Of a DNA stretch of 48,581 nt, positions 33,846 through 38,052 are shown piece after piece. The translations under genes were made by a program, and so were the position numbers. Under the pieces are notes generated by a model. It was given only the letters and a program-made list of their open reading frames with translations. It had not been told where the DNA came from and searched no databases. Each line of letters starts with the position of its first letter. Within the stretch, counting starts at the first letter, position 1. Source of the stretch: Guillardia theta CCMP2712 (taxonomy: Eukaryota; Protista; Cryptophyta); NCBI RefSeq assembly GCF_000315625.1, contig NW_005434548.1, positions 1 through 48,581 of the forward strand, written 5' to 3'.

Positions 33846-36800
33846 ATGAATGCTGATCCCTCTCCTGCTACCATGCATAATGAGCATGTCAGCGCCGATC
33901 AGACAGATGATGATCTTTGCGAAGAGGAACCTCCGGACGATCCTCCGGAAGCCAAATGGAGGTTTGTGTATGTGGTCGTTTTAGTGAGGCTTGACTCTGT
34001 TTTTCATTGACAGATCGAATGGGAATCATGTAGATATTCACGCGAATGTAAGTAAGAGGAAGACGGCTCTGCTTGATAAGAGGCGTAAGCCCCCATCACC
34101 AACTAGCAGCTCTGTGAATGGAAATGGTCTGAATTCGTCGTTGGACTTTCTATCTAACATCCGTCTTGATGTTCATGAGATTGTTCCAAAGCAGCCAACT
34201 GCGGTGGTAAACAATGGAGTCGTAAAACCTTTACCACACACAGAAAACAAGAAGAGCTTTGTACAGACAAAACCACCCAAAGCTGTGACAATCAAAGACA
34301 GTGACAGGAACCTAGAAAACGGGAAGAGAGAGATTCTATCGAACTGTTCGAGGTGCACACAAGAACTTTCACCCAATTACAAAGCAAGTGTGGAGTTTTT
34401 GAATAGCATCTCGCTGGATGCAGTTCCCGAAAACCAGAAACAAACCAAATTCACTGACGTAGTGAGCCCCTCTCTCTATGCAATAAGGAAAAGCAGCGCA
34501 GGAACCAAAACTTCGAATTTAAAAATTCAGCTTCCTGAAGTTTTCAAGAGCCCCGGGGTTCATCCAGAGCGTTGTGTCATTGAAATCACTGGCGGACTTC
34601 CAGTTTGTTCCAATACTCCGACTGCAGTCGAGCGATGTGCTTCGCTGCCCTTGCAGAGTACGACTCCAGCCAACCTTGTGAGGGAAAAGTCTGCACGTGA
34701 AAGCCTGGATTTTTTGACTAATATCAGCCTCGGAGCACCTGCAACAGGGTTGTATGAGGCTTATCCTCCGCCCAGTGCAAGAGTGGGCGAAGAGAACAGC
34801 AAGTTTCCGGCACCAAGCCCGCGATGCGATAGTTGGAACGTTGGATCTCCACAGAAATACGTGGGCTCTAGAAATCACTCCGTGGACATTCCTCCTATGT
34901 CGCCTAAGTTGCTGCCAAGAGCAAAGCAGCTCAGCTTTTCCGAAGAGGACTCTACCCCACCCCCTAAATGGAGCAACAAGATGGAATGGGGTACGTTTGA
35001 GGGATTCATGGGATCCATCGGCATGGTGTCCACAAACAATCGTCGAAAAGCCGGGTTGGGTGCAGATGTTCACAACAGACAATTCAAAAACAAGCAAGAC
35101 TGGGAAAGAAGGCATATTGGCGGCTTCTTGCTTGTTCCCAGAAATCAGAGTGAGCGAAGGATACGAATGCGGAAAGCAAGACGGTCTTTTGGAAGTTATC
35201 AGGAAAGCCATGAAGGTGACTCGTATGAAGATCCCGCTATCGAGGCTGAGACTGGAACGAGAAGTGCTCGATCGAGCATGGACAGCGAAGACTGCATCTT
35301 ACAGGATCGATGCATTTTCCCGGTTGACGAACAGAGGCAAACTGATCCCTTGTCGCTTGTCCCACAGGATGAAAACCAGTATGAGAAAAAGGAAAGGGGC
35401 AAAGAATTTGTCCTGAGTGAAGGACATTGCAACTTGGCGTTGTTTTCCAACCTATCGAGTGCTCATTTGTTAGATTCACGAATTATGTTGTATCCTCAAG
35501 ACATGCACGCGCCTGCAGTTGTTACCGGGGCTCTCCGAGCCCCTATCAGTGTTTTCTCAGTTATTAAGTTTCGTCAAGACGATTTTTGCCCTCAAGGCGA
35601 CCCTGGTGAAATTGTTCATTCAGTAGAGACACAACTGAGGCTCAAGCATGGTAGTTATGCAGAACTTTTGGAAAGGAGATCGAGCAGTGACAGTGGAAGT
35701 GAAGACGAGAAGCCAAAGTACAACCCTTACTTTCTTGATGATCCAGAGATGAGGATCAGCAAAGACCGCACTGTAATCAAGCAAGAAGGCTATATGGTTT
35801 CTTGCATTCCATATGTGAAGCCTTTGGCCATGAAAGAAGAGCTCAATGGACTATTTCTGGCCAAACATGGAGACTGGTTGGAAGGAAGGGAGATCACGCT
35901 TTCAAAGATCAGAGCGCTGAAATCTGGCATCGTCACAGTCGTAAAACTTCTGGTGAGTTGTGCATTCTTCGCATCCTGTGGTTGGTTTTGTAAATGCTTT
36001 TGAATTTACTTGGATCCTCAGGATCTTGAGTTATCAACGGCAGCCATGGCACACGTGTACTTGGAAAAGCTCATCTTGAAGAACTTGGTTCGCAAGCATA
36101 GGTTTTTGTCTCTTCTTTTACTTGTCCTGACATTTTCAATAATTTGATACTGATTTTTCTTGCTTGTAGCCGCAAGGTCACTGCAGCGGTTTGCCTGCTT
36201 CTGGCCGTCAAGTTCAATGAGGTTCCCAGGGACACGCGGGTCTGTGCTATTCAGGTTTGATTTATTTCGTCCATGGAGAGCACAGCGAGACTCAAGGTCG
36301 GTGCAGGATGTGATCGAAAGGCAAAATCGCTTCGACTGTACTCTATTCATTGCTTCTACGGACCCTGGAGTCTTCCTCCCAGCTGACTTGCTGAAGTACT
36401 TTGAGGGGCTGCTGGTATTTCAAGTGTTGGTGCTCTCGTTCTCGTCTGATCGCTGTTGCAAGCCAAACCATGATGACGCCAAGAAGCAGCTCTTGTCAAA
36501 GCGCCCATACATTGTCGTCACTCTACGTGATCGTGCGTCAGCGATCAAGGCGAAAGAGGCCATTTCAAAAGTCACGCTGCCTTCCAACCAATCGATCGTT
36601 GCCGACTTTGTCCCTTCCAACTACGTTTCACGCGAGGTTTTCTCATTCAATTCGACTAGCAACGGAGTGCTAACCTCCTTTCCTTGTCCAGGGAAAAGTT
36701 GGACGAGGAAAAGCTTGCAGCGTCACAGATTTGCTCTCCTGCATGAATCGTGTTCTTGGTGTTGACAAGCGGGCGGTTCTCGATGAGGAGTTTCCTACTT

Positions 36801-37338
36801 TTGTGGACTTGGTCACTCTGCCGTCTTCTGTTGGGGCTGAGCTGACGACACAAACAGGAGCTTTCACTGCACATTGGAGCTGAGGAGCTGCTGCCTCACT
36901 TTCATAGGATCCTTCAGTCCCTTGACACAACGCCGGCCGCCTACATGGTGACGCTGCTTGCTCCTCTTGCATGGCTCTGATGAGGTAACAGGGACAAGAC
37001 AACCCTTCAATGCTCGAAGCCGAGAGCCTCGCGCAGTTCTCTGTGATCAAGGTTGGACCTGACTGTACCTCCTTCCCTCGTTTCCTCTGATACGCCTCTA
37101 ATATCCTCCCTCCTCATACAAGGAGTTAACCCCATAGCAAAGCAGATGCTGACTTTTCATGTTCCAGGAACTGGAAGAGAACGGCGTAGAGCAGGGTGAC
37201 CTCGACAGGGTGAGGAGAACGAGCTTGGGAGGCGAAGGAGTGAGACTGTGATCGTCTAACGGTCTTCTGCTTCAGGTGCGAGGCGTGCTCATGGATCATG
37301 CGCAGAAGTTGATTCCTTGGTTGGCGGAGGCTCAATGA
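33846..37338 (+). CDS. CABLES: CABLES-type (Cdk5 and Abl substrate) cyclin-fold protein with an inserted RRM-like domain
   Basis: Exon 1 MNADPSPATMHNEH...EAKWR splices into ORF 33991. Motifs YNPYFLDDPEM...YMVSCIPYVKP...KEELNGLF...ITLSKIRALK | DLELSTAAMAHVYLEKLILKNLVRKHSRKVTAAVCLLLAVKFNE ... VTDLLSCMNRVLGVDKRAVLDEEFPTFVDL|ELSLHIGAEELLPHFHRIL match the CABLES cyclin box. The 3' end (about 37250-37338) is uncertain. Confidence 0.85.
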
Positions 37339-38052
37339 TGGGCATCATCATCAACTTGATGCTTTGAATCTCATTTTGAAATTGTAAAATAGCAGAATGA
37401 ACTTGTGACACTGTGACTCTGTCCGGTCAAGACTCCGTTCCTGTCCGATGGAAGTGGAAGTTTGCTGACTCTCACATAGTGCGGCAGTTGCCCCCGAGAG
37501 TCGGCGGCAGGCAACTTCCGAGTCAACCGGCCCTGCAACTCTGAATCATTGTGGACGGAACCGTTGATCAGGATGTCGCCGACGGCGGCGAACTTGACAG
37601 GCGGGTCCTTTGATAAACCCGCCGTCGGGGCCCGCCACCCGGTTACCGAGTCCACGCAGTCCGGCCCTCCGAGCAGGGCCCCGGGGCTGACAGTGAGAGC
37701 CTGTCTAAGGGCCCTAAGGCCCGGCCCGGCCCGGCGCTGCCATGATGATCATGGATGGCACTGGCAAAAGTTCGAAACTTTGAGAATGGGTCAAAACTTT
37801 GTTCGCAAGTTTCAAACTTTGCAGCAGAAGCGCGTGAGAAGATGCTGAAGAGGAGCGGGGAGGGTGGGGGGAGGAAGTGAGGGTGGGGGGGAGGGAAGGA
37901 GGAGAGACGAAGAAGAGGAAACAGGAAGTAGGAGAGGAGAGGCAGGGGATTTCGATCATGCAGGACTTTAACGAGTTCAGAGCATTGAAATACAAGAAGA
38001 GGATGACAGTGACGAGCGTCCTGCCAGGGTGAAGTAGAAGCAAGAGGACGGC

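Follow-up and report, generated by a model that had tools for sequence, protein, structure and literature searches.

We conclude, with a probability of roughly 0.7, that a real, expressed and conserved domain resembling the RNA recognition motif (RRM) is inserted within the cyclin box of a CABLES-like protein of Guillardia theta CCMP2712. The gene lies on the forward strand of contig NW_005434548.1 (RefSeq assembly GCF_000315625.1), of which the stretch from position 1 to 48,581 was analysed and is referred to here as the window. The proteins used for comparison were the insert-bearing P0007 and L004 and an insert-free protein of the fungus Dispira simplex (P0008).

The gene structure was read from the sequence of 35200-37800 as a plus-strand gene with very short introns. 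Splicing was mapped on 35600-37500 using two assembled RNA runs, each of a different study, together with a raw RNA run biased towards the 3' end and a DNA-like run. Nine GT..AG introns from 35953 onward were confirmed by the transcript contigs X1 (3210 nt) and X10 (1008 nt), resulting in the following arrangement across the cyclin box.

33846-37338, + strand: CABLES-like coding region, 11 exons and 958 codons with the stop codon at 37336-37338, the frame being open in all exons.
35953-36021, + strand: GT..AG intron, absent from the X1 and X10 contigs.
36022-36101, + strand: exon 3, region of cyclin-box helix 2 (DLELSTAAMAHVYLEKLILKNLVRKH), with joints 35952/36022 and 36101/36170 and aligned to P0007, P0008 and L004.
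36102-36169, + strand: intron of 68 nt, GT..AG, absent from X1 and X10.
36170-36254, + strand: exon 4, encoding helix 3 (RKVTAAVCLLLAVKFNE, 36171-36221) and the 11 residues with which the insertion opens, VPRDTRVCAIQ (36222-36254), with joint 36254/36307.
36255-36306, + strand: intron of 52 nt (GTTTGA..GTGCAG) forming the first junction of the insert, skipped in X1 and X10.
36307-36414, + strand: exon 5, 36 codons, with an E-R-Q motif, strand 1 including the RNP2-like T-L-F-I-A-S (36340-36357) and helix 1 (LPADLLKYFEGLL).
36415-36462, + strand: in-frame intron of 48 nt, GT..AG, skipped in X1 and X10.
36463-36636, + strand: exon 6, 58 codons, with a variable loop, the RNP1-like K-R-P-Y-I-V-V-T (36499-36522), helix 2 (DRASAIKAKEAISKV) and the last strand I-V-A-D-F-V-P, reaching 36615.
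36637-36691, + strand: intron of 55 nt, GT..AG, skipped in the contigs.
36692-36811, + strand: exon 7, with the Gly/Lys linker GKVGRGKAC (36692-36718) that closes the insertion, followed by cyclin-box helices 4-5 (SVTDLLSCMNRVLGVDKRAVLDEEFPTFVDL).
36812-36857, + strand: GT..AG intron, absent from X1 and X10.
36858-36947, + strand: exon 8, end of the cyclin box (ELSLHIGAEELLPHFHRILQSLDTTPAAYM), with joints 36811/36858 and 36947/36992, supported by alignment.

A sequence-only reading of this region had proposed that the insert continues in frame from the LLLAVKFNE helix to the ...DLLSCMNRVLGV helix, and this is what the X1 and X10 contigs from the two studies contain. The junctions 36636/36692 and 36811/36858 had been placed exactly as found in the transcript contigs. 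The first junction had been set at about 36240-36286 and has to be moved, the actual intron (36255-36306) lying 15-21 nt further downstream; the protein reads ...VPRDTRVCAIQ/DVIERQNRF... and not ...VPRDTR/RDSRSVQDVIERQ... as had been suggested. The interior of the insert, which that reading had not written out, is expressed, but the 48-nt intron at 36415-36462 is spliced out of it. Removal of this intron takes out 16 read-through residues, the counterpart of which is missing from the L004 mRNA.

The location of the insert within the cyclin box was assessed by profile and structural comparison. Searches were run exon by exon, and the spliced orthologues P0007 and L004 (residues 696-995) stood in for the G. 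theta protein. The Pfam family Cyclin_N (PF00134, cut-off 23 bits) was recognised in P0007 (27.2 bits), L004 (29.5 bits) and the Dispira protein (35.3 bits). In the two insert-bearing proteins the match breaks off at the start of the extra residues (profile position 90-95 of 127), whereas in the fungus it is uninterrupted from position 12 to 126, which bears out the proposal that the insert occupies a loop of the box. In P0007, the sole Cyclin_N match is at residues 586-657 of 873, and a Pfam search with the 654-residue product of G. theta exon 2 found no domain. The G. theta exons are individually too short to score for Cyclin_N and are 65-75% identical to the P0007 box; the exon 7 product (65% identity to P0007) could also be aligned with the insert-free Dispira protein and with L010, an AT-rich metagenomic sequence. 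When compared with the PDB, the Dispira box matched cyclin T2 (E 8.7e-5) and cyclin T1 (E 1.3e-3), its LLLAVKVNE pairing with LFLAAKVEE where helix 3 ends. In G. theta, helix 3 (LLLAVKFNE) and helix 4 are separated by 114 residues. An AlphaFold2 (AF2) model of P0007:527-850 contained box helices at 63-80, 84-99 and 105-123 ahead of the insert and at 257-268, 272-287 and 294-307 after it, with a predicted local distance difference test (pLDDT) score of 75-89; a Foldseek search with this model returned mostly cyclins and TFIIB, but every E was >0.5. We regard it as very probable that a domain has been inserted into the cyclin box.

Homologues were identified with and without the insert. A word search with the long exon gave a single match, the EukProt entry P0001 of Hanusia phi (78% identity). 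A metagenome scan seeded with the conserved region preceding the box revealed L004, a spliced transcript, and L005/L006, from a GC-rich genome, all of them bearing the insert; as L005 and L006 have 1 difference in 1350 nt, they were counted as one lineage. P0007 (873 amino acids) is encoded with the insert in frame by three independent 3.3-kb mRNA contigs. The product of exon 5 was 44% identical to the P0007 insert (E 3e-8) and 62% identical to that of L004, and exon 6 was 30% identical to the P0007 insert (E 4e-4) and matched L004 and L005 as well. The Hanusia transcript contains the same insert DNA out of frame, its tail matching an alternative-frame open reading frame (ORF) of the window at 36273-36386. 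Because this transcript retains introns, the public Hanusia phi entry is truncated and the insert is hidden in it. Over residues ~656-772, P0001 first includes intron sequence past box helix 2, then passes through the insert out of frame from ...VCAIQ onward and meets a stop. In the L004 contig there is a frameshift within cyclin-box helix 4-5, matches resuming in another frame from 1063 (1063-1067); this is probably an assembly or sequencing error.

The corresponding helix 3-4 loop is four residues long in Dispira and five in L010, and in a distant GC-rich lineage (L012-L014) the insert site has a short loop that is interrupted by an intron. The insert is conserved across five lineages and is missing from the fungus and from two further lineages of eukaryotes; the same insertion, which had been suggested as something to look for in relatives, is homologous in Hanusia phi, P0007, L004 and L005/L006. 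Judged by their likeness to Guillardia and Hanusia, P0007, L004 and L005/L006 may themselves be cryptophytes. Positions without variation in the four lineages that could be aligned are E-R-Q, L-F-x-A, a Pro preceding helix 1, the Tyr in the third element, an Asp, A-x-x-A within helix 2 and A-D-x-x-P within the final strand. Rows in which MAFFT had wrongly placed short fragments of the insert in long alignments were removed ahead of folding. A phmmer search of the 117-residue read-through against 1.84 billion representatives returned only the unspliced Guillardia ORF P0002 and three chance matches to repeats or low-complexity sequence. The insert has diverged too far for searches with a single sequence, and this null result is no evidence that relatives are lacking.

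Kinship of the insert with RRMs is moderately supported, at the level of both sequence and fold. In a phmmer search of the L004 insert against all PDB sequences, the single match below E 0.05 was 2dis (E 0.0075), an RRM deposited as 'unnamed protein product'. The two sequences are in register over RNP2 (CRLFIAS with CRLFIGG), RNP1 (KNRPYVIV with KNRGFAFV), helix 2 and strand 4 (GHRLTADF with GHQIAVDW). A profile built from the insert alignment had seven matches among PDB sequences, all seven of them RRMs (RBM39 RRM2 and RBPMS), at E 0.27-1.5 and none significant alone; RNP1 and helix 2 of G. theta exon 6 are in register with RBM39 and 2dis. RNP2, as L-F-[IVA], is invariant in four lineages. 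AF2, run on a small alignment, modelled L004:696-995 as an alpha/beta domain (pLDDT 64; predicted template modelling score, pTM, 0.50), and Foldseek placed 2dis at the top of the list for this model (E 5e-3, probability 0.99) with many RRMs next. Structural alignment by VIA-align gave Z scores of 7.7 for the calcipressin RRM (root mean square deviation 3.2 over 87 residues), 7.2 for NELF-E, 7.0 for Puf1 and 6.8 for RBM39, the RRMs together spanning Z 7.7-6.2. A Pfam search with the L004 insert showed a weak match to Calcipressin (E 0.2), the sole family seen; the calcipressin 1 domain in PDB entry 1wey carries RRM in its deposited title. Other searches gave little: phmmer of the G. theta read-through against PDB sequences found no match, Pfam returned nothing useful for the single G. 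theta exon products or the 117-residue read-through, an atlas feature search with the P0007 insert had no usable match, and an atlas fold search retrieved generic ferredoxin-like clusters only.

A number of observations weigh against this interpretation. The AF2 model of L004:696-995 (E16-22, H31-40, H45-50, E56-61, H64-81, E85-90) has three strands rather than four, with a short helix at the place of strand 2 (pLDDT 64), and the segment between helix 1 and the RNP1/Tyr strand varies in length and sequence among lineages. Neither RRM_1 nor a related Pfam family was detected at E up to 10 in the G. theta read-through, P0007:640-770 or L004:696-995, and the P0007 insert alone had no RRM match. 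All Z scores in the fold search were <=7.8, within the range that the tool calls uninformative (<8), and the non-RRM ferredoxin-like folds of ACT, PII, ClpS and YajQ score alike. RNP1 is degenerate, with positions 2, 4, 5 and 8 non-canonical and one aromatic position left: R/H-x-Y is kept, position 2 is Pro, His or Arg, and positions 4 and 5 are aliphatic. In the AF2 model of the whole P0007 box, the pLDDT of the insert is <50, so that its placement relative to the kinase face can only be proposed. The only run available as raw reads (X22) covers the last 700 nt, and consequently documents the 3' end and not the insert. Finally, the searches returned no animal CABLES sequence and Pfam as scanned had no CABLES-specific profile, so that orthology to animal CABLES is putative.

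The hallmarks pointed out in the sequence-only reading (RNP2 TLFIA, RNP1 YIVVTL, helix 2 and the last strand IVADF) do fall in register with those of RRMs, but there is no RRM_1 match and the model is three-stranded; the fold comparison it recommended put an RRM first, but at middling scores tied by other ferredoxin-like folds. On balance, the insert probably has an RRM fold, of a divergent kind. That it binds RNA is possible but doubtful.

The alternative that survives best, and which we place somewhat short of even odds, is that the insert is a ferredoxin-like module that does not function as an RNA binder and instead provides a protein-protein or small-ligand surface regulating or localising the cyclin-box protein, as do the RRM-type domains of calcipressin or Nup35, or ACT and PII domains. 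The degenerate RNP1, in which the R-x-Y positions alone are kept, is what such a module would lead one to expect, as are the strand 2 that was not predicted, the weak Pfam match to Calcipressin and the presence of the calcipressin RRM, the Nup35 MPPN domain, ACT, PII and ClpS among the best structural matches. However, the two aromatic residues that RRMs employ most for base stacking, the Phe of RNP2 and the Tyr at position 3 of RNP1, are invariant in all four aligned lineages, and the matches at sequence level are solely to RNA-binding RRMs.

Whether the protein exists with the insert depends on the mature mRNA. Exons 5 and 6 are retained in the spliced X1 and X10 contigs, from which every flanking intron is gone; since the contigs that keep the insert have all the neighbouring 44-116-nt introns removed, the insert is exonic and not an intron. 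In ten runs from five studies, 0.56-0.57 of the 31-mers of 35400-37400 were present. The share of 31-mers that are wholly exonic was computed as 0.577 when exons 5 and 6 are included and as 0.457 when they are left out, and the observed share thus fits mRNA containing the insert and does not fit the skipped form.

It is improbable, in our judgement, that exons 5 and 6 form an alternatively skipped cassette, in which case plain and insert-bearing CABLES-like proteins would both be made and the insert isoform would be conditional. From exon 5 through the last exon, all exons start and end in phase 0, so the frame would survive skipping, and contigs, which drop rare variants, are blind to minor isoforms, the raw reads lying outside the region. 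Against this, no contig contains a skipped joint, the word share in the ten runs is that expected for inclusion, and the insert is also present in the mRNAs of P0007 (three runs) and L004.

That the open stretch is an intron or unspliced pre-mRNA open by chance, with an ordinary cyclin box as the real product, is scarcely credible: although joining 36239 or 36254 straight to 36692 would also be in frame and the public Hanusia entry shows that unspliced transcripts do get assembled, the contigs keeping the insert have every neighbouring intron spliced (including two inside the insert region), the insert protein is conserved in distant orthologues as introns are not, and RRMs were returned by profile and fold searches. 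Skipping of 36240-36691 as one intron, named in the sequence-only reading as the outcome that would speak against it, is not what the X1 and X10 contigs show, and gene models removing this segment as a single intron would be wrong.

The remainder of the gene consists of a long exon ORF (33991-35952), which leads into the series of small exons, and an upstream exon 1 predicted from sequence with its ATG at 33846. The exon 1 motif EEPPDDPPE has an acidic/proline counterpart, GEPPDEPPE, at the N-terminus of P0007. The region from exon 5 to the last exon has introns of only 44-116 nt. The features outside the box are as follows.

33962-34013, + strand: intron 1, 52 nt, predicted from the sequence alone.
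36948-36991, + strand: GT..AG intron, absent from the X1 and X10 contigs.
37052-37167, + strand: GT..AG intron, absent from X1 and X10.
37210-37275, + strand: GT..AG intron, absent from X1 and X10.
37401-37416, + strand: poly(A) addition sites, seen as loose ends with runs of A at 37401 (X10) and 37416 (X22, 18 reads).

The C-terminal 80 residues past the box are split over four tiny exons of 14-30 codons (36858-37338, + strand). The DNA-like run X15 was colinear with the window, its contig having one base fewer at each of 36103, 36116 and 36154, within the 68-nt intron 36102-36169, with no effect on coding; these losses may reflect differences between strains or errors in homopolymers. The sequence at 33150-33560, immediately ahead of the inferred start of the transcript, is a long C/T tract, rich in pyrimidines, in which runs of CCCC/CCCT recur.

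CABLES stands for Cdk5 and Abl enzyme substrate, and CABLES1 and CABLES2 are also known as ik3-1 and ik3-2. Both belong to a class of atypical cyclins with one cyclin box (PMC6971155). The 958-residue protein predicted here appears to be an atypical cyclin of the CABLES type. Its long N-terminal part is of low complexity, and the label is based on the conserved region preceding the box and on the presence of one cyclin box, at the C-terminus.

35713-35952, + strand: pre-box region at the end of exon 2, Y-N-P-x-F-L-D-D-P-E...R-T-V-I-K...T-L-S-K-I-R-A-L-K, with 32 invariant columns.

The pre-box region is 75% identical to that of P0007, 95% to that of Hanusia and 42% to that of Dispira, and further eukaryotes have it as well. 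Human CABLES shares the LLAAK helix and the motif ahead of the box (..LDDP.. / LTLSKIRSLK). CABLES-type cyclins are further characterised by binding to CDK5, CDK2 or CDK3, which they connect with a tyrosine kinase. The N-terminal half contains three copies of the motif S-[LV]-[DE]-F-L-[STN]-[NS]-I-[SR]-L-[DG] (34138-34170, 34387-34419 and 34702-34734, + strand); three copies are also found in P0007 and three in Hanusia, and one (A-L-Q-F-L-T-G-I-R-L-T) near the fungal N-terminus. This pattern suggests that the family has a conserved linear motif for docking.

Based on these observations, the following mechanism may be considered. In Guillardia and its relatives the loop between helices 3 and 4 of the box has gained ~110 residues. 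They form a compact alpha/beta domain of ~80-90 residues between two tethers, the second of them of Gly/Lys; exons 5 and 6 and the end of exon 4 encode the domain, which the mature mRNA contains. The Gly/Lys-rich C-terminal flank is seen in both G. theta and P0007. The domain is most probably a divergent RRM that has kept the Leu-Phe-Ile of RNP2 and the first aromatic residue of RNP1 (Arg-x-Tyr), other signature positions of RNP1 having been lost. In RRM structures the start of strand 1 adjoins the end of strand 4; with its ends side by side, an RRM can therefore bulge from a loop and leave the cyclin fold undisturbed. The insert comes immediately after the conserved Lys-x-x-Glu with which helix 3 ends. 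In the cyclin A-CDK2 complex (CDK, cyclin-dependent kinase), the Lys at the end of helix 3 and a Glu of helix 5 contact the kinase and mark the docking face. Both contact residues are kept here (AVKFNE and DEEFP), the insert beginning a few residues after that Lys; the module would thus sit beside a bound CDK. There it could serve as an extra binding surface that brings RNA, a ribonucleoprotein or a protein partner to the kinase, or it could gate the docking of the kinase itself. The strongest form of this proposal is a working RNA-binding RRM at the kinase-docking face, making the protein an RNA-guided or RNA-gated CDK adaptor, and belonging to a lineage-wide shuffling of RRM exons into domain loops; this seems unlikely.

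The cyclin box is a compact and highly conserved fold on which kinases dock, and to our knowledge a whole additional domain in its helix 3-4 loop has not been reported. A literature search revealed no cyclin box with an inserted RRM, no link between CABLES and RRMs and no relevant paper on Guillardia cyclins. If the module were to bind RNA or a specific partner, it would represent a CDK adaptor tied to RNA metabolism, or to a new class of substrates, in ecologically important algae. Such a link would have come about by insertion, unlike the appended RS domains of the cyclin L/K systems.

Animal CABLES1 and CABLES2 resemble the protein described here in having a long, poorly conserved N-terminal part and one cyclin box at the extreme C-terminus, and the nearest language-model clusters of the fungal homologue are chordate proteins with Cyclin_N only; the cryptophyte-type proteins differ in that ~110 residues have been added to the loop joining box helix 3 to helix 4. 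With the RRMs of 2dis, RBM39 RRM2 and RBPMS, the insert shares the order of strand 1, helix 1, RNP1 strand, helix 2 and last strand, together with the L-F-I of RNP2, the R-x-Y of RNP1, A-A-x-x-A-R in helix 2 and G-H-x-L/I-x-x-D-F/W in the last strand. In contrast to these domains, it falls below the Pfam threshold, is variable in the strand-2 region and sits in a loop of another domain rather than being free-standing. The N-terminal RRM-type domain of calcipressin (RCAN1, 1wey) is its best RRM match by structure, although the two have no significant sequence similarity, the host proteins differ and the calcipressin domain is terminal rather than inserted. In calcipressin, the RRM fold serves a regulator of signalling and not RNA binding of the classical kind.

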